Origin: Mobula birostris
Lineage: Eukaryota
Length of the DNA stretch: 64,000 nucleotides
NCBI RefSeq assembly: GCF_030028105.1
Contig: NC_092380.1
Location: forward strand, 70,305,717 to 70,369,716
Direction of reading: 5' to 3'
Made by a program: the position numbers and the translations under genes. Within the stretch, counting starts at the first letter, position 1. The number at the start of each line of letters is the position of its first letter. Shown one piece after another: positions 1,835 through 27,400 of the stretch. Below the pieces are notes generated by a model that did no database searches, was not told the DNA's origin, and saw only the letters and a list, made by a program, of their open reading frames with translations.

Positions 1835-2425
1835 AATAATGAAGGGCTGGAGATGCAAGCAGGCCAGGCAGTGTCTATGGAAAAGAGTAAACAATACATG
1901 TTTCTGGCTGAGACTTTTCATCAAGAGTGGGAAAGAAAAGAGATCCGAGTAAGACGGCTGGGGGAAGGGAAAAAGTACAAAGTGGTAGGTGATGGGTGAA
2001 ACGGAGAGAGGGAGGGGTGAAGTAAAGTGTAAGATGGCTGGGGGAGGGGAGGAAAAAGTACAAAGTGGTAGGTGATGGGTGAAATGGAGAGGGGGAGGGG
2101 AGGGGTGAAGTGAAGAGTAAGATGGCTGGGGGAGGGGAGGAAAAAGTACAAAGTGGTAGGTGATAGGTGAAACAGAGTGGGGGAGGGGTGAAGTAAAGAG
2201 CTGGGGAGTTGGTTGGTGAAAGAGATAAAGGGCTGGAGAAGGGGAAATCAGAAAGGAGAGAATAGAAGACCACAGAAGAAAGGGAAGGGGGAGGACTACC
2301 AGAGGATGGGGATGGGCAGGTAAGGGGGATAAGGTAAGAGAGGGAAATAGCAATGGGGAATTTCTAAAGGGGGGAGCGGCAGGAAACAATGAAGGGGGGG
2401 CAATTACCAGAAGCTTGAAAATCTT
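1835..2425. mobile_element. Penelope-type repeat fragment with internal triplication of about 70 bp
   Basis: Starts with the same agatgc..gcaggccaggcag motif and a decayed hammerhead; ggaaaaagtacaaagtggtaggtgat occurs three times. Confidence 0.55.
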
Positions 2426-3178
2426 TTTTCGAGAATCCACTTGCCCATGATATTCCTTTAAAACCTTCCAATCCAGGTACTCATCCAAACACTTAAATGT
2501 TTTTATTGTACAAGTATCAGACTGTCCCACAGGTCTCTTTGATACTCTTCCCCTCTCACGTTAAACCTGTGCTCTGTATGTTTTTGATTCCTGTGTGCAT
2601 TGCCCCTTCATTCCTCTCAATAGATGCTGCCCAGCTTGCTGAAATCCTCTAGCATTTTGTTGTGTTTCTAGAAAATTTACAAAATTGATCAATGCATCTG
2701 ATCCACCTGATTAGCTGGGGCAAAGGGAGGAGAGAGGCATTGTTCCATAAATGCACTAATAGTAGTCACACTTTCGTGCAAATGGCATAAGAGTTCAACT
2801 TAACTGTAATAAATGATTCATGGATTTGTCCAGCAGATCGACACAATTACATCATAGTGGCTTAATGTGTCAGATCAGACAACTCCTATTGTACACGAGC
2901 TCTTGGGACACATCTGCCATCCTCAATTAATTTCTCCTTACACCTACAACTAAATCACTGTCTGCCTCACAATTATGTAACTTTTGTGACTTCAATAAAC
3001 AGTATGTTAACTAAAGTGGATTAATTTACCAATCAGAATGGTGAATGGATACTGGATGGTAAACTGCAAAAGAACAATGAAGTTGACAGTAAATTATTTT
3101 ACTCTCAGTTATAAATGAAGTGCTGTCTCCAATTAAAAAAGCTTCCATACTCACTCTTTAAGAAAATGCTACATAAAT

Positions 3179-3483
3179 TCAAATTAATATCAAGTCATAC
3201 TGTTTCATATGTTCTTCCAAATTAAATTCAATTTGAACTTGGATGTGTTGTTTATCATTTGGTTTTGGTGTATAAGTTAGTTCAGTGGTGAAACCGCCAC
3301 CATTGTGAAATGGCTTGTTTGTAACGTACTCCTTTTCATCAAAAGGATAAGCATCTCTGTACCAGATGATATGAGCCTCTTCAACAGCACATCCTTTAAC
3401 ATCGCAAGAAAGAGTTACTGGTTGACCAATTTTCGGACTTTTTGTGAGGCACTTTATTTCTGAAACCTTCTCCCATACATCTG
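3179..3483 (-). CDS. Terminal exon: Ig C-type domain lacking the F-strand Cys, then stop
   Basis: ttctctttttcag acceptor (NAGNAG). Open frame DVWEKVSEIKCLTKSPKIGQPVTLSCDVKGCAVEEAHIIWYRDAYPFDEKEYVTNKPFHNGGGFTTELTYTPKPNDKQHIQVQIEFNLEEHMKQYDLILI*. Resembles the 30904-31233 exon (KISEIK..P.IGKPLTLSC). Not in the ORF track. Confidence 0.85.
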
Positions 3484-6400
3484 CTGAAAAAGAGAATTTA
3501 CAATAAATAACATGAGAAGCTTAAAGGCATTTCAAAAATAAAGACCTATGTAAGTCAATATATATCACTGCACTCGTAAAGTCCTTATTTTAATTCTTAC
3601 AAATTTAAATGTTTACACTAAATCACCATTTGCCACCTGAACTACTGCAGTTGGGTGGATATGGAATATCATCCAGATGAAATATTTGCTGTCATGGCAT
3701 AGAATCATGGAAACATACAGCAGAGGAACAGGGCTTTGTCTCAATTCATCAACACTGACCAAGATGCCGGAAGTTAGACACATCTGCCCACATGGAATGT
3801 ATATCCCTGCCACACTATCCATGTACCTGTTCAAATGTCTTTTAGATGTTATTATTTTACCTGCTCCAACACTTCCTCTGGCAGCTTATTTGATATACTA
3901 TGTATCATTCTCTGCCTCAGGTCCCTTCAAAATTTTTCTCCTCTCACACTTAACTTATACTCTCTAATTTTCAATTCCCTTTGATGGGAAAAAGATCTGT
4001 GCATTCATTCTGACTATGCCCCATATTACATGATACACTTGTATGATCACCTCTCAGTCTCCGATACTCCAATAAATGAAGTCCTAACCTGCTCAGCCTC
4101 TCCCTATAACTCACCTCCCTGAGTCCTGAGAACATTCTCATAAATCTGCTTTGCACTCTTTCCATCCAATGACATCTTTTCTATAAGAAATATTATATCC
4201 ACTCTAAACACACTCATCTGGATTATGCTTCTCTTTTCTAGCTATTCTCAACACAGTAGATCACATGCTAGTTTACCTGTCTTGCCTTGTCAGCATTTCA
4301 TGGTCTGAACCACAATCATTCCCTATAATCATTGCTAACCTGTTTGATATATCTGAATTTATATTACTATATCGCGTAGTTACTAATAAACGAGTATTAG
4401 TTAACAGCAATACCAGACTCCAAGGTGTTTTCCATTTCTGCTGGTTCTTTAACCCTTTATAGGGTACGTAACAAAATTGGGGCCTGCGTTTGGGATTTGA
4501 ACAAATTGTTTGGGGGCTTATTTGGATTGACTGGGGAAAATCCCTTTTGATTTGGTTGTGTGGAAAAACAGCAGAAATGGAGGTTAGTATTGATGAGTTT
4601 CTGGGGCAACCAGCCGCTGAAGCGTTGGATGATGCTACGAGGGATATGCTGTTGGGAATCGCTCACAAGTTAAGGCTTATGGTGAATACTAGAATGAGGA
4701 AGGCTATTTAAACTTTCCCTGAGTTATCAAATACTTCGCTATTACCATCTGCGAAAGATGCAAACGGTAGTCGTGAAGTATTTTATAACCTAGGGAAAGT
4801 TTAATGAGGACATGTTGGAAATATTTGCTGAAGGTGGAGATTCAGCTTCAGTTGGAAAAATTAAAGATGGGCATGAATAACAATTAAAATGATTACAATG
4901 GTCTCTAGTTTTTCCATTCCCTTTGATGGGAAAAATATTTGTGCATTCATCCTGACTATGCCCCATATTATATTATACACCTGTATGATCACCTCTCAGT
5001 CTCCGATACTCCAATAAATGAATTCCTAACCTGCTGAGCCTCTCCCTGTAACTCACCTCCCTGAGTCCTGGCAACATTCTCATCAATCTGCTTTACACTC
5101 TTTCCAGCCAATGATATCTTTTCTAAAAGAAATATCATATCCACTCTAAACACACTCATCTGGACTATGCTTCTCCTTTCTAGCTATTCTCAACACAGTG
5201 GCTCACATGCCAGTTTACTCGTCTTGACTTGTCAGCATTTCAGGATCTGAACCATACTCATTCTCTCCATCCCATTCACTAGAGAAGAGACGTACAGTGA
5301 TAAAGGAGCTTGGTTGTTAATGCAGATGTCATGAATATGTATCAGATGAAAGTGTGGGATGCATGCTCGGCAAGATTCTTTACAACAGAGTCAGTATTCA
5401 TTGCCTTGTGGAAGAGAAGGGAAGTGATCTTGTTTTAAAATGGAGGCCTAAAGTGATTACAAGCATGTTCAGGTATGGAAGTTAGCGCCAGAATCTATCA
5501 TAAAAATCCAGTCTACGTTAGAATATTACGTTAGGGGAGGGGAGGAGAAGATGGCGGTGCGACGCAGCACGCGCAGCTCTCCGGTGAAATGATATTGTAT
5601 CTGTTAAATAGGGGCCGTGGACAACTCTGATTTGATGGAGACAGACGTGAAAGAACAGAGGAACATCTGGAGAAATCTCTGAAACGCCGGTTCGCTGCTG
5701 CTGTTACAGGGCGATCGAGAATCTTCCAGAGGGAAGGCCCCAAAATCCCCGACTTTGCCTGCTGCTGGTGACCGAGGCTGAGGTCGAATCGTTCCGATAG
5801 AGATGGTGCTCGGTACTCGGTGTTGGAGGGTTGATCAGAGGCTCGAAGTCTTCGGACGACTCAAGAGTCGGACTGTGGTCGGGCAACATTCTCATTAAAT
5901 CTGCTTTGCACTCTTTCTAACCAATGATATTTTTTCTATAGGAGAGTAAACAAAGCTGTGCACAATACTTCACATGCAGCACAAACAACACCTTGTACAA
6001 CTGTAATGCAATGCCCTAGCCCCCTACATTCAATTACCCTGATGAAGGCCATCATGCCAAATATGCTTTCTTTTCTGACTGACTATCGGTCATGCCACGT
6101 TCTCATAGTGACATTGAAAATGACGTGTCCACTCTAAACACACTCATTGGAACTATCCCTCTCCTTCCTGAGTATTCTCAACACAGAGGATCACATGCCA
6201 GTGTACTTGTCCTGCTTTGTCAGCATTTCAGTATCTGAACCACACTCATTCCGTCCTTCCCATTCACTTGAGAAGAGACATACAGGTGTCCCTCGCTTTT
6301 CAAACGTTCGCTTTACGAAACCTCACTGTTACGAAAGACCTACATTAGTTCCCTGTTTTTGCTAACAGAAGGTGTTTTCACTGTTACGAAAAAAGGCAGA

Positions 6401-9400
6401 GCGCGAAAAAAGCAGCACATGTCCCGAGCAGTCGCTGTCCCCCGGATTCGGAACTGCATTCTCGCCAGCATTGCTTAAACACGTGCCTGTGAGTAGCTGT
6501 TTGCAAGATGAGTTCTAAGGTATCGGAAAAGCCTGAAAGAGCTCGTAAGGGTGTTATGCTTAGCATAAATCTAGACATAATTAAGCGTTTTGATCATGGT
6601 GAACGAAGTAAGGACAAAGTGAGTTTGGCTTGTGGAAGTTGACGAAGATGATGTTGAAGAGGTTTCGCATCTCATGATCAAGAAACTAATAAATGAAGAG
6701 CTGATGCAATTAGAAGAGGAAAGGATAACAATCAAAATCAAATGCAGAAGCAAGCGGACGGAACATGAAGCAACTGCGTGAGATTTTCGCTGCAATGATA
6801 AACTACGACCTTAATTTTGAAAGGGTACGTCAGTTTAGGGTATATTTGCAAGATGGTTTACAAAGAACTGTATGATAGAAAAATGCGCGAGGCTAGCAGT
6901 CAAGCATATTGTCGTTTTTCAAGCCTTCCACATCAGTCACAGCAGACGACGAACCTCGACCTTCGACATCGAGGCAGGCAGACATAGAAAATGACCTGCC
7001 TTCCATGATTAACAATAAGATGACACCCCCCCGTGTCCCACCACCCCAGTGGACCCAACCCCCGGGCCACGGAGAGATACTGATTCACGGAGAATGGAGC
7101 GGTAGCTGGGAGGCATCCAGCAATCTTTAAGAAAAAAAAAAGCTGAAATAAACAAGCTAATTAATTAGGTGCCGCCCGGCAATTGCCTCTGTTCTAGGCT
7201 GACATTTACGTGCTGGGCTGCACCTAATTAATTAGCATGTTTGTTTTGGCTTTTTTCTTAACGACGTGTTGGATGCCTCATGGCTACCGCTGTACCCCTG
7301 CATGCTTCGCGGATCGGTATCGGTTCGCTGCCCGGAGGGTGGGGGCCATTGCACCACCCCAACCTCTCATGACTCAGCTTAACACACTATCATCAGTGTG
7401 CTCTGCGCTGACTTCCCAATTCCGGTAAGTGATACTACACTGTACATACATTATTTCTACCTTATATAGGCTGTGTATTTTTATGTGTTATTTGGTACGA
7501 TTTGGCAGCTTCATAGCTTAAAGGTTACTGGAGAGAGTGTTTTGCCAAGAGCGCTTGCGTGAGATTTTCTGCCGAGAGTGCTTGTGCTGTGTTTCTGCCA
7601 AGAGCACTTGCATGAGATTTTCACTACGGAGAACAGTGCAGGCAATCATTGTAGAGAAGTATTTCTAATTTATATAGGCTGTGTTTCTATCATATCATTC
7701 CTGCTTTTACTATATATTCCTGTTATTTTAGGTTTTATGTGTTATTTGGCATGATTTGGTAGGTTACTTTTGGGTCTGCGAATGCTCACAAATGTAAGGG
7801 GGTTTTGATTTTTATGTTTCTGCGGAGGCTAATTAAAATGGCGTCTTTGTTATGTTAATCTGGGGAATGCGGCTTTGTTGTGTTAAACACTGAGAAAGTT
7901 TGCGCTAACAGTTTGTTTTTGCTTTAGAGTCTGATAAGAGAGTGCTATTAACCAATTGGGATAGTTGTTATGGTTTTGGTGTATTTGAAGATACTGTATG
8001 CGCGGGGTTTTGCGGGAGAGCGAGACAGAGGATGGACGAGGTGCTGTGAGTCCGCTAACGAGGTCGGACCCTGAGCGGGACGCTCGGCGAGGAGATGGAG
8101 ACGGACTCGTGTGGAGCGTCTGGTCGACCACCGTTGTTGGTCCCAGGCGGCCGGTCGAGGTGGTCCGAGGGGGTCGCAGGGTGACGAAGAAGGTCCTTGA
8201 GCTCCAACGGTTTTTGTGCACGAAGAGATTGAACTTTGATAAGTGTGGCGCCTTTTATTTTCCTTTTATATTTTATTCTCTTTTAATTATATAGTTCCAG
8301 TAATATCTATAAACTGTATATCATTTAATTGCATCTGGTGTATTGTCTGTTATTTGGGTGGGGTGGGGTACCTCACACAGCATCCACACAAACGAATTAT
8401 CCAGTTTGGCGGGGCCGAGGCTGTTTCCCTAGACGACAGCGAGCCGAGCGACCCTGAGGGTGGCCGGGGGGGTTACACAAATTTTTCCCATATAAGTAAA
8501 TGGTATTTGCTTCTTCGCTTTACAACATTCTGGCTTATGAACCGTTTCATAGGAATACTCTACCTTCGGATAGCGGGGGAAACCTGTACAGCGATAAGTG
8601 AGTTTAGTTGTTAATGCAGTAGTCACAAATATGTATCAGATGAAAGTGTAGGCAAGATTCTTGACAACAGAGTCAGTATTCATTGCCTTGTGGAAGAAAA
8701 GGGAAGTGATCTTGCTTTAAAATGGAGGCCTAAAGCGATTACATGCATGTTAAGACATGGAAGTTGGCACCAGAATCCACCATAAAAATCTAGCCCACAT
8801 CAGAATAATTGAAGAGTGGATGACATGACAGAGCCTCAAGGGAAAAGTAGTTCACCGTAAGGTGCTCAAGTCTCTGTTTGGAGATGACTACTTCATTGAT
8901 ATATAATCAGGAGAAACAGAAGGTATACAAATGATGTGAGAAATTTAATTTTGTAAAGCTTAAGTAGATCTGTATTTGGCTCTATCACTGTGTTTTGTCA
9001 TCAGCTAAAGAACAGTGGAAATTTATTGGAAATAGGCACCCAGGAAATGAAGGCAGCAAACTGACAGGGCACTGAAATGGACTGGCAGCCTGTATACAAC
9101 AACTCAAATTCACCATTCCAAATACTAATGCTTATCTCATTTGTAAAAATCTAAAATTCTACTTTGCCCCAATAATTGAATTCAAATAAATGAACACTTT
9201 ACCTTCACTTGTTGCTCTATTGCTGCCATCTTCCTTGTCAGCATCATCTGTAGGGGGAAAAATAGTTTAATAAAACCCAACATTAGTCAAATCAAATTAG
9301 CTCTTAGAAATTTAAAACACTGATTATCTCATCTAACCAGATCTTAAACATCTGTATCCACCTACAATCATCTATCCCCAGCATTAGAAAAAAAATCCAC

Positions 9401-12400
9401 ACCCAGTTTAGTCAATGGGAGGACTTGATATGAACTGAATGGTTCAATTAATATTGTGTTAAGTTTAAAATAAATGATCATTGCATGTATTACTTTATTG
9501 AACTGAGTCACATGAACACACAAGCACTCTGCACTGCTCCCTGTTACAAATGATGGTGAGGACGTGGCTATGGAGTAGACAAAAGTGTGGGATACATGCT
9601 GAAAAAGATTATTGACACCAGAGTAGGGATTCACTGCTTCTTGGAAGAAAAGGGAAGTGATCCTGTTTTAACATGAATCCCTTAAGGGTAAAATGCATGT
9701 TCAGGCCTGGAAGGTGGCACTAGAATATACCATGAAAATCCAGTCCATGTTAGAATACATGAAGAGTGGACCACCTGACAGGGCCAAGGGAAAAGCACAT
9801 GATCCTGCTCCAGCTGCACATAGTTTACAGTGAGGAACTGCATTGTCTCTTTGGAGAGGACCACCTCTTTGATCTTTATTCATCTGATCAGACAAACATA
9901 GGTGTTCAAATGACAGGGAAAAATTAATTTGTAAAACTTAACTAGATCAGTATTTGGCTCGGAGTGTATTTCTGTCATCATTTCACAAACTATAGAAATT
10001 TATTGGATATGAGCACCCAAGAAATGAAGGCAGCAGACTGACAAATTATTGAAATGGACTGGCAGCTTGTATACAAGAGCTCAAATTCACCATTCCAAAT
10101 ACCAATGCTTGTCTCAAGTGCAATAATATAAAATTATACTTTGACCCAATAATGTGTTTCAAGTAAACCATGCCTAGTTCAGGAACATCCCAAAATGATC
10201 ACTTTACCCTCATCTTTTGCTCTACTGCTGCCATTGGTATGTTGTGGGAGATGGAAGATCTCTGGCTGTGTGCCCAGAGACCCGAGTTCTTAGGGCACAG
10301 AGCTCAGAAAAAACGATGCAAAGGACTTTTAACATTGTAAATCAGTGAGTTGTTTGTTATGTCTTCCTTCTCACTGTGAAACAGGGACATCTCTTTTTCC
10401 CTGATTAGGGAGAGAGGAGGGGAAGGGGGGGAAGGGAGAGAGAGGGGGGGAAGGGAGAGAGGGGAGGAAGGGAGAGGGGGGGGAGGGAGAGGGGGGGGGA
10501 GGGAGAGGGGGGGGAGGGAGAGGGGGGGAAGGGAGAGAGGGGGGAGAGGGAGAGGGAGAGAGAGAGAGAGAGACACACACACACACACAGCCCGTGGTGT
10601 ATCGAATTACCAGGTGAACAAGTAGATTTTGGGATACTGCAAGCCTGTGTCTTTACTGATGCTTCGCTGCACACTTGAGTGCTTGGTGGAGGGCGCCAAT
10701 GATTTTTTAACTGGTGTGGGAAGGGGGATTGCTCCTTTGCTGCTGCTTATGCATGGGAGTAGGGAGCTGGGGGGGGGGTCTTTGGGGTTCTAACATTTAA
10801 CTATCATTCATTCTCTGGGGCACTCCTCTGTTTTCACGGATGGTTGCAAAGAAAAAGAATTTCAGGATGTATATTGTATACATTTCTGACATTAAATGGA
10901 CCCATGAAACCTTTAAAATCTTCCTTACAGTCAGAGTCTGTAGGTTAAAACAAAAAGTGGTTTAATAAAACCTGACATTAGTCAAATCAAATTAGCTCTT
11001 TAACTTTAAAACATGAATTATTTCATCTAACTACATGTTAAATTGTAACCACCTAAAATTATCTATCCATAGCATTAGGAAAAAAAACACACCGTCTCAG
11101 TTAATAGGAGGTTTGATATGAAGTAAATGGTTAACGTTATATTTTGTTAAGTTTAAAATAAATGATTACTGCATCTATAACAACTTTATTGAAATGTGTC
11201 ACATGAACACACGAGTACTCTGCCCTACAACTGATGGTGAGCACATGGCTGTGCAGGGGATCTACAAGTCCATGGGGATGCACCTGGATGACAGTCTTGA
11301 GTGGAGCACCAACACAGAAGCGGTGTCCAAGAAGGGCCAGAGTTGCCTCTGCTTCTGGAGGAGATTTGAGGTCTTTTGCAGTATGCAGGCTTCTCCTTCA
11401 CTCCTTTGACCACTCTGTTGTCACCAGTACAATCTTCTATGTGGTAGTGTGCTGGGGCAATGGCATCCACACGGGTGAGGCCATCAGGCTCAATAAGCTG
11501 TTTAGAAAGGCTGGCTCTGTCATAGGAGTCTAACTGGACACACGGGAGGCTGTGGTAGAACAATGGACACTACGAAAAATCATGGCAATTCTGGACAATG
11601 ATTCTCGCCCTCTATATGGCACCTTGGCTGAACGGAGGAGAATTTTTAGTAATAGACTAAGACAACTGTGCTGTTCCAAGAGTGCTATATAAATTCATTC
11701 TACCTTCGGCCATTAGGATCAATAATGAGTCAGCTAGCAGCGGGTAGGTAATGACTCCCTCCTGTTAGACTGTTTGAAGTACCAGATTTTTTAAATTCTA
11801 TTTCCCTTCTGATATTTATATCTGTGCACTTTTAATGCTACTCTGACACTGTAATTTCCTTTGGGATCAATAAAGTATCTATATCTGTCTAGTACAAGAT
11901 CTCCCTTGAAGGCGTAATTTGAATTCTTTCCTCCTAACTTACTTTCTTCATGAACCACCTCACATTTGATACAACTCCCATGATCTGATTCTGCTGGTAT
12001 AAACTTCATGCTTGTAATTGATAAATTCAGACCATCTTCTGCAATCCCAGGATGACATGTTTTTGCACCTTTCCATCTTTACATCATGTTACTTAGATTT
12101 TTGCAGGAAAATAGCCCTTCATGGAGATGCTAAATGTTGCAGACTTTTTACTTCGAACTAGTTCCGGATCACTTTTAATATCAGATATCTCCTCTCAACT
12201 TAAACCTATGCTCTCGTTTTCAATTCCCTTTCATGGGAAAATGATTTGTGCATTCACAATGGAGGCCTAAAGCAAATACAAGCATATTCAGGCATGGAAG
12301 TTGGCACCAGAATCTACCATGAAAATCTAGCCTAGGTTAGAATATTTGAAGAGTGGACCACTGACAGAGCCGAAGGGAAAAGCACATGATCCTTCTACAA

Positions 12401-15400
12401 ATGCTCATATTTCATCGTAAGGTGCCAAAGAGTCTGGAAATGCGTACCCCACTGATTTTCACTCATCTGATCAGGAGAAATAAGAGTTATACAAATGACA
12501 GAAAAAGTTCATTTTTGCAAAGCTTAATCTGATCTGTATTTGGTTTTTTGAGTGTACTTTTATCATCTAAAGAACTGTGGAAATTTATTTGATTTGGGCA
12601 TCCAGGAAATGAAGGTGGCAGACTGACAGAAAATTGAAATGGGCTGGCAGTTTGTAGACAACAGCTCAAATTCACAATTCCAAATACTAATGATTGTCTC
12701 GTGTAATAATGTAAAAATCCACATTGATCTAATGATGGACTTCAAGTAAAACATATCCAGTTCAGGAACTTCCCACAATGAACACTTCACCTTCAATTTT
12801 TTCTTTACTGCTGCCATCTTTCTCAGAGATACAGTCTGTAGGTAAAAAAGAAAGTAGTTTAAGAAAACTTCAGATTCGTCCAATCAAATTGACTCTTGTA
12901 AATTTCAAACATTAATTATTTCATCCAACCATATGTTAAACAACTCCAACCACTTAGAATTATTTATTCATGGCATAGGAAAAAAACGCTCCGTTTCAGG
13001 CAATATGAGGTTTGATATGAAGTAAATAGTTAAATTAATATTCTGTTAAGTTTAAAATAAATGATCATGTCATCTAAAATTTATTTAGACTTTATTTAAA
13101 ACTTTATTGAAATATGCCTCATGAACAGACTGGTGCTCTGCATTGCTCCCTGTTACAAGTGATGATGAGGACCTACAAGTACCTGGCGGTGCACCTGGAT
13201 GACAGACTTGAGTGGAGTGCCAACACAGCGGCTGTGTCCTGGAAGGGCCAGAGTCACCTCTACCTCTTGAGAAGACTAAGGCCCTTTGGAATATGCTGGC
13301 GTCTCTTTCACCTATTCTAACAGTCTAATGTCACCAGTACAACCTTCCATGCAGTGGTGTGCTGGGGCAATGGCATCAACACGGATGATGCCAACAGGCT
13401 CAATAAACAATAAAATTTAACATTGAATATCTCCTCTTAATGATCTCTAGTTTTTCCATTCCCTTGTTGGGAAAAAGATTCATACATTCATCCTGACTAT
13501 GCCCCATATGATATTATACACCTCTTGGATCACCTCTCAGTTTCCAATACACCACAAATGAAGTCCTAACCTGCTCAGCCTCTCCCTATAACTCACCCCC
13601 TTGAGTCCTGGCAACATTCTCATGAATCTGCTTTGCAATCTTTCCAGCCAATGTTATATTTTCTATAAGAGAGTAAATAAAGCTGTGCACAATACTCCAT
13701 GTGCAGCATTACCAACATCTTGTACAAGTGTAATGCAATGCCCTAGCCCTCTACATTCAATGCTCTAATGAAGGGTACCATGCCAAATATGCCTTCTTAT
13801 TCACATATCAACCTGTTATGTTCTCATAGGGACATTAAAAATATCACATCCACTCTAACCACACTCATCTGGACTATGCTTCTCCTTTCTAGCTATTCTC
13901 AACACAGTGGCTCACATGCCAGTTTACTCGTCTTGCCTCGTCAGCATTTCATGATCTGAACCATACTCATTCTCTCCATCCCATTCACTAGAGAAGAGTG
14001 ATAGTGATAAGGGAGTTTATTTATCAATGCAGAAGTCACAAATACACATCAGATGAAAGTGTGGGATGCATGCTCGGCAAGATTCTTGACAACAGAGTCA
14101 GTACGTATTTCCTTGTGGAAGAGAAAGGAAGTGACCTTGTTTTAAATTGGAGGCCTAAAGTGATTACAAGCATTTTCAGGTCAGGAAGTTGGCACCAGAA
14201 TGTACCATAATAATATCCAGCCCACGTTAGACTATTTGAAGAGTGGACAACATGACAAAGCCACAAGGGAAAAGTAGCTCACCGTTAGGTGCTCAAGTGT
14301 TTGTTTGGAGATGGCTACTTCGTTGATATTTACTTATACGATCAGGAGAAACAGGTATATACAAATGACATGAGAAATTTAATTTTGTAAAGATTAATCA
14401 GATTGTATTTGGCTCTTTCAGTGTATTCTTGTCATCATCTAAAGATCAGTAGAAATTTACTGGATATGGACACCCAAGAAATGAAGGCAGCAGACTGACA
14501 AGAGTTTTGAAATGGACTGGCAGCTTGTATACAACAGCTTAAATTCACCATTCCAAATACCAATGCACATCTCATGTGCAATAATATAAGATTCTACCTT
14601 GACCCAATAATGTGTTTCAAGTAAACCATGTCCAGTTCAGGAACTTCCCAAAATGATCACTTTATTTTCATCTTTTGCTCTACTGCTGCCATTGGTATGT
14701 CGTGGGAGATGGAAGATCTCCGGCTATGTGCCCAGAGACCCGAGCTCTTTGGGCACAGAGCTCGGAAAAAGTTATGCAGTGGACTGTTAGCATCATAAAA
14801 TCAGAAAATTGTTTGTTATGTCTCCCCACTTGCAGTGAAACAGGGACACCTCTTTTTCCCTTGAGAGGGGGGGAGAGAGGGGGGGAGAGGGGGGGGAGGG
14901 GGGGGGGAGGGGGGGAGAGAGCGCGCGAGCGAGCCTGTGGTGTATCAATCTACCAGATGAACAAGTAGACTTTGGGGTACTGCAAGCCTGTGTTTTTATT
15001 GATGCTTTGCTGCACTTTTGAGTGCTTGGTGGAGGGTGCCAATGATTTTTTAGCTGGTGTGGGAAGGGGAATTGTCCCTTTGCTGCTGCTTATGTATGGG
15101 AGTAGGGAGCTGGGGGGGGGGTCTTTGGGGTTCTAACATTTAACTATCATTCATTCTCTGGGGCACTCCTCTGTTTTCACGGATGGTTGCAAAGAAAAAG
15201 AATTTCAGGATGTATATTGTATACATTTCTGACATTAAATGGACCCATGAAACCTTTAAAATCTTCCTTACAGTCAGAGTCTGTAGGTTAAAACAAAAAG
15301 TGGTTTAATAAAACCTGACATTAGTCAAATCAAATTAGCTCTTTAACTTTAAAACATGAATTATTTCATCTAACTACATGTTAAATTGTAACCACCTAAA

Positions 15401-18400
15401 ATTATCTATCCATAGCATTAGGAAAAAAAACACACCGTCTCAGTTAATAGGAGGTTTGATATGAAGTAAATGGTTAACGTTATATTTTGTTAAGTTTAAA
15501 ATAAATGATTACTGCATCTATAACAACTTTATTGAAATGTGTCACATGAACACACGAGTACTCTGCCCTACAACTGATGGTGAGCACATGGCTGTGCAGG
15601 GGATCTACAAGTCCATGGGGATGCACCTGGATGACAGTCTTGAGTGGAGCACCAACACAGAAGCGGTGTCCAAGAAGGGCCAGAGTTGCCTCTGCTTCTG
15701 GAGGAGATTTGAGGTCTTTTGCAGTATGCAGGCTTCTCCTTCACTCCTTCGACCACTCTGTTGTCACCAGTACAATCTTCTATGTGGTGGTGTGCTGGGG
15801 CAATGGCATCCACACGGGTGATGCCATCAGGCTCAATAAGCTGTTCAGAAAGGCTGGCTCTGTCATAGGAGTCTAACTGGACACACGGGAGGCTGTGGTA
15901 GAACAATGGACACTACGAAAAATCATGGCAATTCTGGACAATGATTCTCGCCCTCTATATGGCACCTTGGCTGAACGGAGGAGAATTTTTAGTAATAGAC
16001 TAAGACAACTGTGCTGTTCCAAGAGTGCTATATAAATTCATTCTACCTTCGGCCATTAGGATCAATAATGAGTCAGCTAGCAGCGGGTAGGTAATGACTC
16101 CCTCCTGTTAGACTGTTTGAAGTACCAGATTTTTTAAATTCTATTTCCCTTCTGATATTTATATCTGTGCACTTTTAATGCTACTCTGACACTGTAATTT
16201 CCTTTGGGATCAATAAAGTATCTATATCTGTCTAGTACAAGATCTCCCTTGAAGGCGTAATTTGAATTCTTTCCTCCTAACTTACTTTCTTCATGAACCA
16301 CCTCACATTTGATACAACTCCCATGATCTGATTCTGCTGGTATAAACTTCATGCTTGTAATTGATAAATTCAGACCATCTTCTGCAATCCCAGGATGACA
16401 TGTTTTTGCACCTTTCCATCTTTACATCATGTTACTTAGATTTTTGCAGGAAAATAGCCCTTCATGGAGATGCTAAATGTTGCAGACTTTTTACTTCGAA
16501 CTAGTTCCGGATCACTTTTAATATCAGATATCTCCTCTCAACTTAAACCTATGCTCTCGTTTTCAATTCCCTTTCATGGGAAAATGATTTGTGCATTCAC
16601 AATGGAGGCCTAAAGCAAATACAAGCATATTCAGGCATGGAAGTTGGCACCAGAATCTACCATGAAAATCTAGCCTAGGTTAGAATATTTGAAGAGTGGA
16701 CCACTGACAGAGCCGAAGGGAAAAGCACATGATCCTTCTACAAATGCTCATATTTCATCGTAAGGTGCCAAAGAGTCTGGAAATGCGTACCCCACTGATT
16801 TTCACTCATCTGATCAGGAGAAATAAGAGTTATACAAATGACAGAAAAAGTTCATTTTTGCAAAGCTTAATCTGATCTGTATTTGGTTTTTTGAGTGTAC
16901 TTTTATCATCTAAAGAACTGTGGAAATTTATTTGATTTGGGCATCCAGGAAATGAAGGTGGCAGACTGACAGAAAATTGAAATGGGCTGGCAGTTTGTAG
17001 ACAACAGCTCAAATTCACAACTCCAAATACTAATGATTGTCTCGTGTAATAATGTAAAAATCCACATTGATCTAATGATGGACTTCAAGTAAAACATATC
17101 CGGTTCAGGAACTTCCCACAATGAACACTTCACCTTCAATTTTTTCTTTACTGCTGCCATCTTTCTCAGAGATACAGTCTGTAGGTAAAAAAGAAAGTAG
17201 TTTAAGAAAACTTCAGATTCGTCCAATCAAATTGACTCTTGTAAATTTCAAACATTAATTATTTCATCCAACCATATGTTAAACAACTCCAACCACTTAG
17301 AATTATTTATTCATGGCATAGGAAAAAAACGCTCCGTTTCAGGCAATATGAGGTTTGATATGAAGTAAATAGTTAAATTAATATTCTGTTAAGTTTAAAA
17401 TAAATGATCATGTCATCTAAAATTTATTTAGACTTTATTTAAAACTTTATTGAAATATGCCTCATGAACAGACTGGTGCTCTGCATTGCTCCCTGTTACA
17501 AGTGATGATGAGGACCTACAAGTACCTGGCGGTGCACCTGGATGACAGACTTGAGTGGAGTGCCAACACAGCGGCTGTGTCCTGGAAGGGCCAGAGTCAC
17601 CTCTACCTCTTGAGAAGACTAAGGCCCTTTGGAATATGCTGGCGTCTCTTTCACCTATTCTAACAGTCTAATGTCACCAGTACAACCTTCCATGCAGTGG
17701 TGTGCTGGGGCAATGGCATCAACACGGATGATGCCAACAGGCTCAATAAACAATAAAATTTAACATTGAATATCTCCTCTTAATGATCTCTAGTTTTTCC
17801 ATTCCCTTGTTGGGAAAAAGATTCATACATTCATCCTGACTATGCCCCATATGATATTATACACCTCTTGGATCACCTCTCAGTTTCCAATACACCACAA
17901 ATGAAGTCCTAACCTGCTCAGCCTCTCCCTATAACTCACCCCCTTGAGTCCTGGCAACATTCTCATGAATCTGCTTTGCAATCTTTCCAACCAATGTTAT
18001 ATTTTCTATAAGAGAGTAAATAAAGCTGTGCACAATACTCTATGTGCAGCATTACCAACATCTTGTACAAATGTAATGCAATGCCCTAGCCCTCTACATT
18101 CAATGCTCTAATGAAGGGTACCATGCCAAATATGCCTTCTTATTCACATATCAACCTGTTATGTTCTCATAGGGACATTAAAAATATCATATCCACTCTA
18201 ACCACACTCATCTGGACTATGCTTCTCCTTTCTAGCTATTCTCAACACAGTGGCTCACATGCCAGTTTACTCGTCTTGCCTCGTCAGCATTTCATGATCT
18301 GAACCATACTCATTCTCTCCATCCCATTCACTAGAGAAGAGTGATAGTGATAAGGGAGTTTATTTATCAATGCAGAAGTCACAAATACACATCAGATGAA

Positions 18401-21400
18401 AGTGTGGGATGCATGCTCGGCAAGATTCTTGACAACAGAGTCAGTACGTATTTCCTTGTGGAAGAGAAAGGAAGTGACCTTGTTTTAAATTGGAGGCCTA
18501 AAGTGATTACAAGCATTTTCAGGTCAGGAAGTTGGCACCAGAATGTACCATAATAATATCCAGCCCACGTTAGACTATTTGAAGAGTGGACAACATGACA
18601 AAGCCACAAGGGAAAAGTAGCTCACCGTTAGGTGCTCAAGTGTTTGTTTGGAGATGGCTACTTCGTTGATATTTACTTATACGATCAGGAGAAACAGGTA
18701 TACAAATGACATGAGAAATTTAATTTTGTAAAGATTAATCAGATTGTATTTGGCTCTTTCAGTGTATTCTTGTCATCATCTAAAGATCAGTAGAAATTTA
18801 CTGGATATGGACACCCAAGAAATGAAGGCAGCAGACTGACAAGAGTTTTGAAATGGACTGGCAGCTTGTATACAACAGCTTAAATTCACCATTCCAAATA
18901 CCAATGCACATCTCATGTGCAATAATATAAGATTCTACCTTGACCCAATAATGTGTTTCAAGTAAACCATGTCCAGTTCAGGAACTTCCCAAAATGATCA
19001 CTTTATTTTCATCTTTTGCTCTATTGCTGCCATTGGTATGTCGTGGGAGATGGAAGATCTCCGGCTATGTGCCCAGAGACCCGAGCTCTTTGCGCACAGA
19101 GCTCGGAAAAAGTTATGCAGTGGACTGTTAGCATCATAAAATCAGAAGATTGTTTGTTATGTCTCCCCACTTGCAGTGAAACAGGGACATCTCTTTTTCC
19201 TTTGGGGNNNNNNNNNNNNNNNNNNNNNNNNNNNNNNNNNNNNNNNNNNNNNNNNNNNNNNNNNNNNNNNNNNNNNNNNNNNNNNNNNNNNNNNNNNNNN
19301 NNNNNNNNNNNNNNNNNNNNNNNNNNNNNNNNNNNNNNNNNNNNNNNNNNGGGGGGGAGAGAGAGCCTGTGGTGTATCAATCTACCAGATGAACCAGTAG
19401 ACTTTGGGGTACTGCAAGCCTGTGTTTTTATTGATGCTTTGCTGCACTTTTGAGTGCTTGGTGGAGGGCGCCAATGATTTTTTAGCTGGTGTGGGAAGGG
19501 GAATTGTCCCTTTGCTGCTGCTTATGCGTGGGAGTAGGGAGCTGGGGGGGGGGGTCTTTGGGGTTCTAACATCTAACTATCATTCATTCTCTGGGGCACT
19601 CCTCTGTTTTCACGGATGGTTGCAAAGAAAAAGAATTTCAGGATGTATATTGTATACATTTCTGACATTAAATGGACCCATGAAACCTTTAAAATCTTCC
19701 TTACAGTTGGAGTCTGTAGGTTAAAACAAAAAGTGGTTTAATAAAAACTGACATTAGTCAAATCAAATTAGCTCTTATAACTTTAAAACATGAATTATTT
19801 CATCTAACTACATGTTAAATTGTAACCACCTAAAATTATCTATCCATAGCATTGGGAAAAAAAACACACCGACTCAGTTAATAGGAGGTTTGATATGAAG
19901 TAAATGGTTAACGTTATAATTTGTTAAGTTTAAAATAAATGATTACTGCATCTATAACAACTTTATTGAAATGTGTCACATGAACACACGAGTACTCTGC
20001 CCTACAACTGATGGTGAGCACATGGCTGTGCAGGGGATCTACAAGTCCATGGGGATGCACCTGGATGACAGTCTTGAGTGGAGCACCAACACAGAAGCGG
20101 TGTCCAAGAAGGGCCAGAGTTGCCTCTGCTTCTGGAGGAGATTTGAGGTCTTTTGCAGTATGCAGGCTTCTCCTTCACTCCTTCGACCACTCTGTTGTCA
20201 CCAGTACAATCTTCTATGTGGTGGTGTGCTGGGGCAATGGCATCCACACAGGTGAGGCCATCAGGCTCAATAAGCTGTTCAGAAAGGCTGGCTCTGTCAT
20301 AGGAGTCTAACTGGACACACGGGAGGCTGTGGTAGAACAATGGACACTACGAAAAATCATGGCAATTCTGGACAATGATTCTCGCCCTCTATATGGCACC
20401 TTGGCTGAACGGAGGAGAATTTTTAGTAATAGACTAAGACAACTGTGCTGTTCCAAGAGTGCTATATAAATTCATTCTACCTTCGGCCATTAGGATCAAT
20501 AATGAGTCAGCTAGCAGCGGGTAGGTAATGACTCCCTCCTGTTAGACTGTTTGAAGTACCAGATTTTTTAAATTCGATTTCCCTTCTGATATTTATATAT
20601 GTGCACTTTTAATGCTACTCTGACACTGTAATTTCCTTTGGGGTCAATAAAGTATCTATATCTATCTAGTACAAGATCTCCCTTGAAGGCGTAATTTGAA
20701 TTCTTTCTTCCCAACTTTCTTTCCTCATGAACCACCTCACATTTGATACAACTCCCATGATCTGATTTTGCTGGTATAAACTTTATGCTTCTAATTGATA
20801 AATTCAGACCATCTTCTGCAAACTCAGGATGACCTGTTTTTGCGCCTTTCCATCTTTATATCATGTTACTTTGATTTTCGCAGGAAAATAGCCCTTCATG
20901 GAGATGCTAAATGTTGCAGGCTTTTTACCTTGAACTATTTCGGGATCACTTTTAATATCAGATATCTCCTCTCAACTTAAACCTGTGCTCTCTTGTTTTC
21001 AATTCCCTTTCAAGGGAAAATGATTTGTGCATTCACAACGGAGAACTAAAGCAATTACAACCATGTTCAGGCATGGAAGATGGCACCAGAATCTACCATG
21101 AAAATCTAGCCTAGGTTAGAATATTTGAAGAGTGGACCACTGACAGAGCCGAAGGGAAAAGCACATGATCCTTCTACAAATGCTCATATTTCACCATAAG
21201 GTGCCAAAGAGTCTGGAAATGAGAATCCCATTGATTTTTACTGATCTGATCAGGAGAAATAAGAGGTATACAAATGACAGAAAAAGTTCATTTCTGTAAA
21301 GCTTGATCTGATCTGTATTTGGTTTTTTGAGTGTACTTTTATCATCTAAAGAACTGTGGAAATTTATTTGATTTGGGCACCCAGGAAATGAAGGTGGCAG

Positions 21401-24400
21401 ACTGACAGAGAATTGAAATGGGCTGGCAGCTTGTAGACAACAGCTCAAATTCACAATTCCAAATACTAATGATTGTCTCATGTGTAATAATGTAAAATCC
21501 TACTTTGACCTAATGATGGACTTCAAGTAAAACATATCCAGTTCAGGAACTTCCCACAATGAACACTTTACCTTCAATTATTGCTTTACTGCTGCCATCT
21601 TTCTTAGAGGTATGGTCTGTAGGTAAAAAAGAAAGTAGTTTAAGAAAACTTCAGATTCGTCAAATCAAATTGCCTCTTGTAAATTTCAAACATTAATTAT
21701 TTCATCCAACCATATGTTAAACAACTCCAACCACCTAGAATTATTTATTCATTGCATAAGGAAAAAAACACTCCGTTTCAGTCAATTTGAGGTTTGATAT
21801 GAAGTAAATAATTAAGTTAATATTTTGTTAAGTTTAAAATAAGTGATCATGTCATCTAAAACAACTTCACACAGACTGGTGCTCTGCATTGCTCCCTGTT
21901 ACAATTGATGATGACGACCTACAAGTACCTGGGGGTGCACCTGGATGACAAACTTGAGTGGAGTGCCAACACAGAGGCTGTGTTCTGGAAGGGCCAGAGT
22001 CACCTCTACCTCTTGAGAAGACCAAGGCCCTTTGGAATATGCTGGCGTCTCTTTCACCTATTCTAACAGGCTAATGTCACCAGTACAACCTTCCATGCAG
22101 TGGTGTGCTGGGGCAATGGCAACAACACGGATGATGCCAACAGGCTCAATAAACTTCGTAGAAAGGCTGGCTCTGTTATAGAAGTCAAAGTGGATGCTGT
22201 GGTCGAACAAAAGACACTACAGAAAATCCTGGCAATTTTGGACAATGATTCTCATCTCTGTATGCCATCTTGGCAGAATGGAGAACTTTTAGTAACAGAC
22301 TAAGTTAACTGCGCTGCTCCAAACGGCACTATATCAGGACATTCGTACCCTTCGCCTCTAGTCGGGATAGTGATGATCCCCTCCTGTTATGCTGTTTAAG
22401 ATAACTTATTTTTAATTCCTTTGACTTCTGTTCTAATATTTATATCTGTGCACTTGTAATGCTACCGTGACACTGCAAGTTCCTTTGGGATCAATAAAGT
22501 ATCTATATTTATCAAGTACAAGTTCTCTCCCGAAGGTGTAATTTAAATTCTTTCTATTGAACTTTGTCTCTTTGTGAACCACCTCACATTTGATACAACT
22601 GCCATGATCTGTTTTTGCTGGTGTAAACTTTATGCTTGTAATTGATGAAATCAGACCTTCTTCTGCAATCTCACGGTGACCTGTTTTTGCGTCTTTCCAT
22701 CTTTCTACCATGTTACTTTGATTTTTGCAAGAACACAGCCATTCAAGATGCTAAATGTTGCAGGCTATTTAGCTTGAAGTAGTTCTGGATCACTTTTAAT
22801 ATCAGGTATCTCCTCTCAATGCTCCCTAGTTTTTGCATTCCCTTTGATGGGAAAAAGATTCATACATTAATCCTGACTATGCCCATATGATATTATACAC
22901 CTCCAGGATCACCTCTCAGTCTCCGATAAATGACAAATAAAATCCTAGCCTGTTCAGCCTCTCCTTATAACTCACCCCCTTGAGTCCTGGCAAAATTCTC
23001 ATAAATCTGCATTGTACTCTTTCCAGCCAATGTTACATTTTCTATAAGAGAGTAAACAAAACTGTGCATAATACTGCATGTGCAGCATTACCAACATCGT
23101 GTACAACTGTAATGCAATGCCCTAGCCGTATACATTCAATGTGCTGATGAAGGCCATCATGCCAAGTCTGCCTTCTTATTCACCTATCTACCTGTTATGT
23201 TCTCATAGGGACATTAAAAATATCATATCCACTCTAAACACACTCATCTGGACTATGCTTCTCCTTTCTAGCTATTCTCAACACAGTGGCTCACATGCCA
23301 GTTTACTCATCTTGCCTTGTCAGCATTTCAGGATCTGAACCATACTCATTCTCTCCATCCCATTCACTAGAGAAGAGCGATACAGTGATAAGGGAGTTTA
23401 TTTATCAATGCAGAAGTCACAAATACACATCAGATGAAAGTGTGGGATGCATGCTCGGCAAGATTCTTGACAACAGAGTCAGTACTTATTGCCCTGTGGA
23501 AGAGAAGGGAAGTGATCTTGTTTTAATTTGGAGGCCTAAAGTGATTACAAGCATGTTCAGGTAGAGAAGTTGTCACCAGAATCTACCATAAAAATCCAGC
23601 CCACGTTAGACTATTTGAAGAGTGGACGACATGACAAAGCCACAAGGGAAAAGTAGCTCACCGTTAGGTGCTCAAGTGTTTGTTTGGAGATGGCTACTTC
23701 ATTGACATTTACAGGAGAAACAGGAGGTACACAAATGACATGAGAAATTTAATTTTGTAAAGAATAATCAGATTGTATTTGGCTCTTTCAGTGTATTCTT
23801 GTCATCATCTAAAGATCAGTGGAAATTTACTGGATATGGACACCCAAGAGATGAAGGCAGCAGACTGACAGAGCATTGAAGTGGACTGGCAGCTTGTATA
23901 CAACAGCTTAAATTCACAATTCCAAGTACCAATGCACATCTCATGTGCAATAATATAAGTTTCTACTTTGACCCAATAATGTGTTTCAAGTAAACCATGT
24001 CCCTTTCAGGAACATCCCAAAATCATTACATTACCTTCATCTTTTGCTCTACTGCTGCCATTGGTATGTCGTGGGAGATGGAAGATCTCTGGCTATGTGC
24101 CCAGAGATCCGAGTTCTTTGGGCAGAGAGCTTGGAAAAAGTGACCCAACGGACTTTTAACATCATAAAATCAGAAAATTGTTTGTTATGTCTCCGCTCTC
24201 GCTGTGAAACAGGGACACCTCTTTTTTCCCTTATTGGGCAGAAAGAAAAAGCCTGTGGTATATCCAATTAGGTGAACGAGTAGAATTTGGGGTCCTGCAA
24301 GTCTGTATCTTTATCGATGCTTTGCTGCAAGCTTGAGTGTTCAGTGGAGGGGGCCGATGCTTCTTTTGCTGGTGGAGGAGGGGGGATCGCTGCTTTGCTG

Positions 24401-27400
24401 CTGCTTATGATTGAGAGTGGGGAGCTGGGGGGGGCTTTGGGGTTCTATCATTTAACTGTCATTCATTCTTTGGGGCACTCCTGTTTTCGTGGATGGTTAG
24501 AAGAAAAAGAATTTCAGGATGTATATGGTATACATTTCTCTGACATTAAACGTACCTTTTGAAAGGGAAGATCTTCTGGAACCTTTCATATGGGCAGAGT
24601 CAAAGTAAAAGCAGTTTAATAAAACCTGACATTAGTCAAATCAAATTAGCTCTTGAAATTTAAAACATTAATCATTTTACCTAAACAGATATTAAACTGT
24701 AACCACCTAGAATTATCTATCCACAGCATTAGGAAAAAACCACACTGTTTCAGTCAATGTGAGGTTGGATATGAAGTAAATGGTAAAATTAATATTATTT
24801 TTAAGTTTAAAATAACTGATCATTGCATCTCTAACAACTTTATTGAAATGTGTCACATGGACACACGAGTACTCTGCACTACAGTTGCTGATGAGGACGT
24901 GGCTGTGCTGAGGACCTACAAGTACCTGGGGGTGCACTTGGATAACAGACTTGAGTGGAGCACCAACACAGAGGCTTTGTCCAAGAAGGGCCAGAGTCCC
25001 CTCTACCTCTAGAGAAGACTAAGCTCCTTTGAAGTATATAGGCCTTCTTTTCACTTGTTCTAACAGTCTGCAGTGGCCAGTACAATCTTCTATGTGGTAG
25101 TGTGCTGGGGCAATGGCATCAACATGGGTGATGCCATCAGGCTCAATAAACTGTTCAGAAAGGCTGGCTCTATCATAGGAGTCTAAATGGATACACGTTT
25201 GACTGTGGTAGTACAATGGACACTATAAAGAATCATGGCAATTCTAGACAAGTACAAGTTCTCCCTTGAAGATGTAATTTGAATTCTTACTTTTGAAGTT
25301 TGTCTCTGTGTCAACAACCTCACATTTGATACAACTTCCATGATCTGTTTTTGCTGGTGTAAACTTTATGCTTGTAATTGATGAAATCAGACCTTCTTCT
25401 GAAATCTCACAATGACCTGTTTTTGCATCTTTCCATCTTTATACCACATTTTTATGCCACATATTATACACCTGTATGATCACCTCTCAGTCTCCGATAC
25501 TCCAATAAACGAAGCCCTAACTTGTTCAGCCTCTCCCTATACCTCACCTCCGAGTCCTGACACCATTCTCATCAATCTGCTGTGCACACTTTCCAGCCAA
25601 TGATATTATTTCTATGAGAAATATCATATCCACTCTTAACACACTCATCTGGACTATGCTTCTCCTTTCTAGCTATTCTCAACACAGTGGCTCACATGCT
25701 AGTTTACCCGTCTTGCCTTGTCAGCGTTTCATGATCTGAACCACACTCATTCCCTCCATCCCTTTCACTAGAGAAGAGCGATACAGTGATAAGGGAGTTT
25801 ATTTATCAAGGCAGAAGTCACAAATACACATCAGATGAAAGTGTGGGATTCATGCTCGACAAGATTCTTGACAACAGAGTCAGTATTTATTGACTTGTGG
25901 AAGAGAAGGGAAGTGATCTTGTTTTAATTCGGAGGCCTAAAGTGATTACAAGCATGTTCAGGTAGGGAAGTTGGCACCAGAATCTACCATAAAAATCTAG
26001 TCCACATTAGACTATTTGAAGAGTGGATGACATGACAAAGCCATGGCCTGTTCTTCATCAACTTATGGTATTGCTGCACTGTTGTAACTATATGTTATAA
26101 TTATGTGGTTTTTGTTAGTTTTTCAGTCTTGGTCTGTCCTGTATTTTCGTGATATCAAACTGGAGGAATATTGTATCATTTCTTAATGCATGCATTACTA
26201 AATGACAATAAAACAGGACTACGTGTCCTCAGAATCTGATCTAATATTTGAAGAGTTGACAACATGATGGAGCCTAAAGGGAAAAGTAGTTCGCCAGAAG
26301 GTGCTCAAGTGTCTGTTTGGAGATGACTACTTCATTGATACTTACATATATAATCAGGAGAAACAGCTGGTATACAAATGACGTGAGAAATTTAATTTTG
26401 TAAAGCTTAATCAGATCTATATTTGGCTGTTTCAGTGTATACTTGTTATCATCTACAGAACAGTGGAAGTTTATTGGATAGGGGCACCCAAGAAATGAGG
26501 CAGCAATCAGACAGGTCCATTAAAATGGGCTGGCAGCTTGCAGACAACAGTTCAAATTCACCATTCCAAATACTAATGCTTGTATCATGTGTAATAATCT
26601 AAAATTCTACTTTGCCCCAATAATGGATTTCAAGTAAATGAACACTTTACCTTCACTGTTGCTTCATCACTGCCATCTTCCTTGACAGCATTGTAAGGGG
26701 AAAATAGTAGTTTAATAAAACCCAACATTAGTCAAATCAAATTAGCTCTTAGAAATTTAAAACACTAATTATCTCATCTAACCAGACCTTAAACATCTCC
26801 ATCCTCCTAGAATCATCTATTCCCAGCATTAGAAAAAAATCCACACCAGTTTAGTCAATGGGAGGACTTGATATGAACTGAATGGTTCAATTAATATTGT
26901 GTTAAGTTTAACATAAATGATCACTGCATGTATTACTTTATTGAAATGAGTCACATGAACACACAAGCACTCTGCACTGCTCCCTGTTACAATTGATGGT
27001 GAGGATGTGGCTATGGAGTGGACAAAAGTGTGGGATACATGCTGAAAAAGATTATTGACACCAGAGTAGGGATTCACTGCTTCTTGGAAGAAAAGGGAAG
27101 TGATCCTGTTTCAACATGAATCCCTGAAGGATAAAATGCATGTTCAGGCACGGAAGGTGGCACTAGAATATACCATGAAAATCCAGTCCATGTTAGAATA
27201 CGTGAAGAGTGGACCACCTGACAGGGCCAAGGGAAAAGCACATGATCCTGCTACAGCTGCACATAGTTTACAGTAAGGTAGTGAAGTGTCTCTTTGGAGA
27301 GGACCACCTCTTTGATCTTTACTCATCTGATCAGACAAAGATAGGTGTTCAAATGACAGGGAAAAATTAAATTGTAAAGCTTAACTAGATCTGTATTTGG

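Follow-up and report, generated by a model that had tools for sequence, protein, structure and literature searches.

A tandem array of 45-nt linker exons in a B7-H6-like gene of Mobula birostris

Linkers between immunoglobulin (Ig) domains can be lengthened by duplication of the short exons that encode them. The IgG3 hinge is encoded by up to four duplicated hinge exons whose number varies by allotype, compared with one in IgG1, IgG2 and IgG4 (PMC4202688), and in the batoid gene UrIg2 skates and rays have lost C domains that sharks keep and have gained short hinge exons (PMC12227049). Here we analyse a window of 64,000 nucleotides (nt) from the ray Mobula birostris (contig NC_092380.1, positions 70,305,717 to 70,369,716), in which four 45-nt units lie between the exons of two Ig-like domains, Ig6 and Ig7. 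We consider it very probable that these units are genuine coding exons of one B7-H6 (NCR3LG1)-like gene and that they encode a flexible tether that has grown by tandem amplification.

The locus resembles IGHG3 in that short tandem-duplicated exons stand between C1-set Ig exons, with copy number setting the length of the inter-domain linker. The repeated hinge exons of IgG3 are also 45 nt long. However, the IgG3 hinge is Pro/Cys-rich, carries inter-chain disulfides, forms a polyproline helix and is extracellular, whereas the manta units are acidic, rich in Lys and Ser, predicted to be disordered, located after the transmembrane (TM) segment and carried in units of 4.3 kilobases (kb) that include a dead Ig exon; the two share no sequence homology. 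UrIg2 offers a parallel from the same animal group, as a non-rearranging gene of the Ig superfamily (IgSF) with multiple C domains that combines domain loss with gain of short exons, but it is another gene, its hinge exons are proline-rich and extracellular, and tandem amplification of large units has not been reported for it. Human B7-H6 is the best solved relative of the V exon described below and has the same V-C1-TM order; unlike the ray protein, it is not known to have Ig-like domains or linker exons past the membrane span. Finally, the B7-related BG and butyrophilin genes of chicken build tails from arrays of tiny symmetric exons, the tails varying in length between genes. Those exons are 21 nt long and encode heptads of a coiled coil, whereas the manta units are 45 nt (51 nt in paralogues), show no heptad pattern and are predicted to be disordered. 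In the paper collection searched, no account turned up of B7H6 homologues with Ig-domain tails or with linker exons.

Linker exons and their place in the spliced product

The four units were re-read on the minus strand of the window, whose positions are used throughout. All are 45 nt long and lie on the minus strand at 21616-21572, 17178-17134, 12835-12791 and 9247-9203 (linker exons 1 to 4). Each has an acceptor consisting of a pyrimidine tract that ends in ctacag and a donor in which GAAG is followed by gtaaag or gtgaag, and each is open in phase 1-1 when translation takes in the G that the upstream phase-1 exon leaves over. The preliminary description of this DNA had placed four 45-nt units with AG acceptors and GT donors at these positions, and re-reading confirmed them; translation also returned exactly the peptides that it had listed, namely DHTSKKDGSSKAIIE for exon 1, DCISEKDGSSKEKIE for both exon 2 and exon 3, and DDADKEDGSNRATSE for exon 4. 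In every unit the first two bases serve to complete an Asp codon and the last four are GAA-G, so any number or combination of units stays in frame and gives ...E-D... junctions. The exons at 17134 and 12791 do not differ from each other, nor do their flanks, with 0 differences over 600 nt upstream; among the four units there are hence only three sequences, from about two independent lineages. Chance alone could produce an open 45-nt frame with AG and GT, and it is thus RNA splicing and identity with RefSeq products that decide whether the units are exons.

Joining thirteen exons of the window, all on the minus strand, yields a product of 950 residues that is identical at 950/950 positions to Mobula birostris XP_072128567.1. 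These are the leader exon (55297-55174), the V exon (38549-38208), the C1 exon (36918-36598), a TM exon of phase 1-1 (35767-35651), the exons of Ig3 (33917-33477), Ig4 (33058-32678), Ig5 (32342-32031) and Ig6 (31233-30904; C1-set by Pfam class, with its second Cys lost), the four linker exons, and the terminal Ig7 exon with the stop codon (3483-3179). Leaving out one DCISEKDGSSKEKIE-type (DCISEK) unit reproduces exactly the 935-residue XP_072128569.1, and moving the Ig7 acceptor three bases downstream (3480 instead of 3483) reproduces exactly XP_072128568.1. The second acceptor belongs to a NAGNAG motif (cag-cag, 3480-3486, minus strand), which gives isoforms with and without one Ala; a one-residue isoform difference of the same kind is also seen in Hemitrygon and Mobula hypostoma. 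The four exons, the isoform shorter by one unit and the NAGNAG variant are thus already known from RefSeq models of the same genome. The array had been described as hidden, and the open reading frame (ORF) track indeed misses all four exons, but the RefSeq models include every one of them, so the array was overlooked by the ORF track only.

RNA evidence consisted of assembled contigs from four runs of one study, aligned to window positions 3290-9289; these runs contain 26-38% of the sampled words from the exon-rich stretch 30800-38700. Contig depth was 109-320 at the terminal Ig exon, with 0-6 in the neighbouring intron, and 112-270 at linker exon 4 versus 0-6 in the adjoining intron. A joint between 3483 and 9203 was present in all four runs, with a depth equal to that of the Ig7 contig, and the skipped segment ends in CT..AC on the plus strand, that is, GT..AG on the minus strand. 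The Ig7 contigs are 1.1-1.3 kb long and extend into the 3′ untranslated region. Beyond 9249, the next letters in the contig of one run are the final 27 nt of the 12791/17134-type exon in reverse complement, indicating that an exon of this type is spliced directly to the 9203 exon, which in turn joins Ig7. Together, the RNA joint and the identity with the RefSeq product bear out the proposal that the units are exons of a single transcript and lie between its Ig domains 6 and 7; they are spliced one after another, with the Ig6 exon before them and the terminal Ig7 exon after. It is accordingly extremely improbable that they are exon-like relics outside any mRNA: most unit copies in the array are dead or damaged, and a 45-nt open frame is expected by chance, but neither point accounts for a splice joint in RNA, an exon-to-exon continuation and an exact match to three RefSeq isoforms.

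The contigs cross the Ig7 boundary without a branch, indicating that the 9203 exon is included in the dominant form. The suggestion that the units are cassette exons holds in part: RefSeq isoforms in five ray species differ by at least one whole unit, but exon 4 looks constitutive in the four RNA runs, in contigs that lose rare forms and so show presence, not absence. In 4/4 runs the contigs end exactly 29 nt into the upstream linker exon. This stop may mark a branch point of a k=31 de Bruijn graph, at which the exon end is followed either by AT (the 9203 exon) or by AC; the AC-starting alternative would be the next identical exon or a decayed copy of a 51-nt exon type described below. Elsewhere in the last intron, RNA contigs at 5490-5889 and 6290-8689 reach summed depths in the thousands; the variants and short joints there are numerous, a pattern to be expected from an expressed multi-copy repeat family and not from the gene itself.

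From its domains, the gene is an uncharacterised long-form B7-H6 (NCR3LG1)-like member of the IgSF. The product runs from a signal peptide through V, C1 and TM segments to five Ig-like domains (Ig3-Ig7). The V-set and C1-set assignments have Pfam E-values of 1.4e-7 and 1.3e-10, the remaining Ig exons are C1-set, and the closest solved structures to the N-terminal V-set exon are human B7-H6 chains (E 9e-14). The sole hydropathy peak besides the signal peptide, at residues 266-297, corresponds to the TM segment after V-C1. An exhaustive protein search with the Ig6 exon returned a family of 750-1400-residue proteins that are named 'uncharacterized', except in alligators, where the NCBI name is natural cytotoxicity triggering receptor 3 ligand 1 (NCR3LG1). 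The order V-C1-TM-many-Ig recurs in proteins of elephant shark (a chimaera), coelacanth, electric ray and stingray, and relatives of similar length were found in lungfish and alligator. The run of Ig-like domains ends in a terminal domain that is well conserved in all twelve species of an alignment and holds most of its invariant columns. We also considered a two-gene model, with a V-C1-TM gene and a separate multi-Ig gene; no leader-like exon was found between TM and Ig3, the RefSeq product and all orthologues run through, and the model was rejected.

The linker itself comprises 60 residues (790-849) between the last two Ig-like domains. It consists of 32% Asp/Glu, 18% Lys/Arg and 22% Ser/Thr, lacks Pro, and has one Cys in each of two units only. 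In an AlphaFold model of residues 690-950, built using 12 orthologues, the predicted local distance difference test (pLDDT) score of the linker was 34-45 and no secondary structure was seen, whereas the flanking Ig folds scored 86-95. The linker is thus predicted to be a disordered charged segment between two folded Ig domains, in keeping with the charged linker originally proposed. It does not have the Pro/Cys-rich sequence with inter-chain disulfides of the IgG3 type, nor is it built from 21-nt heptad exons of the BG/butyrophilin type, the units being 45 nt long and without helix in the AlphaFold model. We therefore regard it as hinge-like in layout but, judged by sequence, not as a member of the IgG3 hinge class.

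All of Ig3-Ig7 are encoded after the sole TM segment (35767-3179, minus strand), and it is unusual for C1-type Ig domains to form a tail that follows a membrane span. Several of these domains lack one or both disulfide cysteines; Ig4 and Ig5 retain both in all species seen. The single membrane span predicts a cytosolic tail, which raises the possibility of a regulated phospho-linker, in which Ser/Thr residues near acidic residues would act as CK2-type sites that switch the terminal Ig domain. The position of the linker downstream of the TM segment, an S-x-x-E/D pattern that can be read in each manta unit and the missing cysteines would suit this idea. However, skate units contain 1-2% Ser/Thr, making phosphorylation unlikely as a conserved role, and the cysteines of Ig4 and Ig5 mean that a luminal or extracellular location fits at least as well; overall, we think a phospho-linker unlikely. 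Should the tail indeed prove cytosolic, an intracellular array of C1-type Ig domains with a hinge polymorphic in length would be without precedent.

Tandem array, relic exons and assembly gap

Self-alignment showed that the Ig6-Ig7 intron is filled by a nested tandem array on the minus strand (about 29712-3937). Its youngest units, of ~4.3 kb, occupy 21616-17179, 17178-12836 and 12835-10503; they share 96.5-100% identity with one another and 73-92% with older units. The second, 17178-12836, is 4343 nt long, and the third differs from it by 2.4%. With a period above 500, the array escapes Tandem Repeats Finder. Each young unit contains an intact 45-nt exon, a dead Ig exon, a decayed exon of a second type and a 3′-half relic.

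The dead Ig exon, one per unit, is found at 20971-20571 on the minus strand, and further copies of the same relic type lie on that strand at 16137-16534, 11794-12191, 22436-22854, 25250-25450 and 28346-28720. A frameshift is common to all six copies; they also contain in-frame stops and have lost the B-strand cysteine. They are most similar to the penultimate Ig domain in the orthologues of sawfish, electric ray and catshark (44-56% identity), so the relic is orthologous to the Ig domain that stands before the linker in one-unit species.

The second exon type is 51 nt long and of phase 1-1. Its best preserved copy, at 28237-28187 (minus strand), has a weak acceptor, encodes DSDSAHMKGSRSSSLSK and stands outside the RefSeq models of this gene; another minus-strand copy at 24556-24606 is without AG. 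Exons of this type are coding sequence in the orthologue of M. hypostoma and in the paralogue of M. birostris. Alignment identified a decayed copy at 11021-10886, with a good acceptor, 36 nt open and a poor donor (G followed by gtccat), and sister copies near 15230-15364 and 19660-19798, all on the minus strand. A dead copy of the 45-nt exon, with AG lost and a 1-nt deletion, lies at 26772-26637 on the same strand; the 9203 unit has no closer relative. The partial copies at 10918/10234, 15261/14692, 19694/19033 and 24608/24061 were considered as one micro-exon split by an insertion, but alignments resolved them into two separate relic types: the decayed 51-nt-type exon, which shares the upstream intron, and the 3′-half relic. 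The dead Ig exons and decayed sister exons in each repeat unit could serve as a genomic record of how the linker grew.

The first young unit contains an assembly gap at 19208-19350, the sole run of N, which is intronic and 2.0-2.2 kb from the nearest of the four exons. When unit 17178-12836 was aligned across it, unit positions 5-2252 fell at 21612-19359 and positions 2316-4343 at 19204-17179; as both flanks match one unit in order, the two sides of the gap are colinear within a single unit. The 64 unit positions left unaccounted for correspond to a GA-rich microsatellite of the sister unit (14863-14921). GA-rich microsatellites at 10407-10570 and 14863-14921 occupy the equivalent place in successive units, and the gap is that place in the first unit. 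Because the gap is intronic and ~2 kb from the exons, no exon or reading frame depends on it; whole extra 4.3-kb units could nevertheless sit in it, leaving the unit count uncertain.

Several points weigh against the reading of four genuine, amplified exons, and the first of these concern the RNA and the assembly. The RNA support consists of contigs from runs whose RNA status was guessed, and one run is flagged 'probably DNA'. Its depth is nevertheless confined to exons and its spliced joint is that of the remaining three runs; either the label is wrong or the sample contained cDNA-like material. For the first linker exon (21572) and its junction with Ig6 the support comes from RefSeq, the junctions from Ig6 to 21616, from 21572 to 17178 and from 17134 to 12835 lying outside the RNA-aligned stretch. 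The RefSeq models in turn derive from the same assembly and so give no independent proof of two identical exons. The exons at 17134 and 12791 might be a single real unit that the assembly duplicated, with three exons in the actual array or another number hidden by the gap, as the 100% identity across a 4.3-kb unit and the run of N inside the neighbouring unit would allow. We consider this distinctly unlikely. The contigs of 4/4 runs break where a second, AC-starting junction would branch the graph; identical unit pairs also occur in Hemitrygon and in the M. birostris paralogue; and the 2.4% difference between the second and third young units shows that the copies are not all collapsed duplicates.

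Linker length and domain loss across species

Copies of the unit arose by tandem duplication, and their number ranges from one to six across species and paralogues. In catshark, whale shark, sawfish, electric ray and elephant shark, the linker before the terminal Ig domain has 16-24 acidic residues and consists of one unit. Hemitrygon akajei has four units, with isoforms that lack one or another; Hypanus sabinus has three in one gene and six in a paralogue; and M. hypostoma has five (15, 15, 17, 15 and 15 residues), while units of 15 and 17 residues alternate in the paralogues of M. hypostoma and M. birostris. Among skates, Amblyraja radiata has four units, with three in shorter isoforms, and Leucoraja erinacea has isoforms with six, five or four. 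Stingrays thus have 3-6 units and skates 4-6, giving linkers of 45-90 residues in Hemitrygon, Hypanus, Mobula, Amblyraja and Leucoraja, compared with the single unit of sharks, sawfish, electric ray and chimaera, in agreement with the proposal that linker length follows exon copy number. RefSeq isoforms of multi-unit species step by 15 residues, and it is from these steps only that the 45-nt exon structure is read in the Amblyraja, Hemitrygon and M. hypostoma orthologues. Within any one species the units are close to identical, but from species to species they are dissimilar.

The penultimate Ig domain, which in Mobula survives as the dead exon, is also missing in skates and is retained in sawfish and electric rays. 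In the usual batoid phylogeny, skates are sister to other rays. Taken with the retention of the domain in sawfish and electric rays, this placement makes domain loss and linker expansion look independent in skates and stingrays. We propose that the Ig exon originally preceding a single linker exon died first, and that the module of dead Ig exon and linker exon (~4.3 kb) was then amplified in tandem by unequal recombination. Linker length would be set by copy number and, in some species, also by exon skipping, since symmetric phase-1 exons can be read in frame in any subset. The disordered charged segment encoded between the folded domains would act as a flexible tether that sets the distance, reach and freedom of the conserved terminal Ig domain. 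It is conceivable, though doubtful, that the expansion is a repeated evolutionary answer to loss of an Ig domain, skates and stingrays each having lost the penultimate domain and then multiplied a 15-residue linker exon to 3-6 copies. If so, a rigid domain would have given way to a hinge whose length can be adjusted, in line with proposals made for antibody hinges, in the region behind a membrane span.

Neither an old, uncharacterised branch of the B7-H6 family with a long tail of Ig-like domains, nor growth of a linker from one to as many as six units in rays and skates, homogenised within species, nor a record of such growth in dead Ig exons and decayed sister exons was met in the literature searched. 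For comparative immunology the locus may provide a small natural case of a hinge that formed through loss of a domain and amplification of exons. It also carries a caution for genome scans, in that symmetric micro-exons are missed by ORF tracks and found by standard RNA-guided annotation. The evolutionary story is of moderate interest; the exons themselves add nothing to public annotation.

In other members of the gene family, Ig domains are repeated as well. A neighbouring paralogue in M. hypostoma has six near-identical tandem copies of the Ig6 domain, and in the Hypanus sabinus paralogue a block of Ig5 and Ig6 occurs four times, indicating that amplification of exon blocks is common in this family; part of it could be an artefact of assembly or gene models. 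In a skate, an intron-less Logan contig of 1.1 kb encodes a 270-residue product that spans the Ig3-Ig4 junction of the Leucoraja orthologue and then has a different tail, which suggests an alternative 3′ end after Ig4 in skates.

Divergence of the linker exons and other features of the window

The divergence data stand on the same side as the caveats about RNA and assembly. Units 1 and 2 differ at 6/45 exon positions (13%) versus 6.6% in their flanks, with six non-synonymous and 0 synonymous changes, and the 9203 unit differs from its dead sister by 16% in the exon versus 5% in the flank. For pairs of old units, the ratio of the proportions of non-synonymous and synonymous differences (pN/pS) was 0.7-0.9. 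Comparison of exon with flank and of pN with pS among the copies in the window therefore gave no signal of purifying selection on the linker peptide, so that linker length may be something tolerated, not tuned. Nor can positive selection be claimed from counts this small (Fisher p 0.12 and 0.013). The comparison with intron divergence had been suggested in the preliminary description, which held that exons diverging as fast as the flanking intron would refute its proposal. The exons do diverge at least as fast as the introns; since they are used although they diverge fast, divergence is no valid refuter for a disordered linker. Constraint seems to act only on length, charge, a K-x-D-G-S core and the Asp/Glu ends fixed by splice phase. 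Such weak constraint on the peptide is typical of a disordered spacer, and neutral drift fits as well.

These observations lead to the alternative that the units are neutral passengers, exons that inherited strong splice sites and a symmetric phase and whose number drifts by unequal crossing-over, changing linker length with no adaptive role. Exon divergence no lower than that of introns, a pN/pS near 1 and homogenisation of units within but not between species are all consistent with it, as is the amplification of other exons in this family of loci (Ig6 six times in the M. hypostoma gene and the Ig5 and Ig6 block four times in Hypanus). On the other hand, a linker exon has been retained at the same position from chimaera to alligator, its acidic, hydrophilic composition has been kept despite turnover of sequence, and expansion is found in skates and stingrays, the two lineages without the preceding Ig domain. 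We therefore take neutral drift as a serious possibility, though we lean against it, and favour an amplified flexible tether.

The first intron, between the leader and V exons, contains a stretch (43038-49045, plus strand) with long ORFs that by eye resemble retroelement gag-pol, including a CCHC zinc-knuckle motif at 45832-46581 and an ORF of 446 residues at 46538-47875. Two transposase-like ORFs, at 43038-43619 and 48758-49045, were likewise recognised by eye in this stretch.

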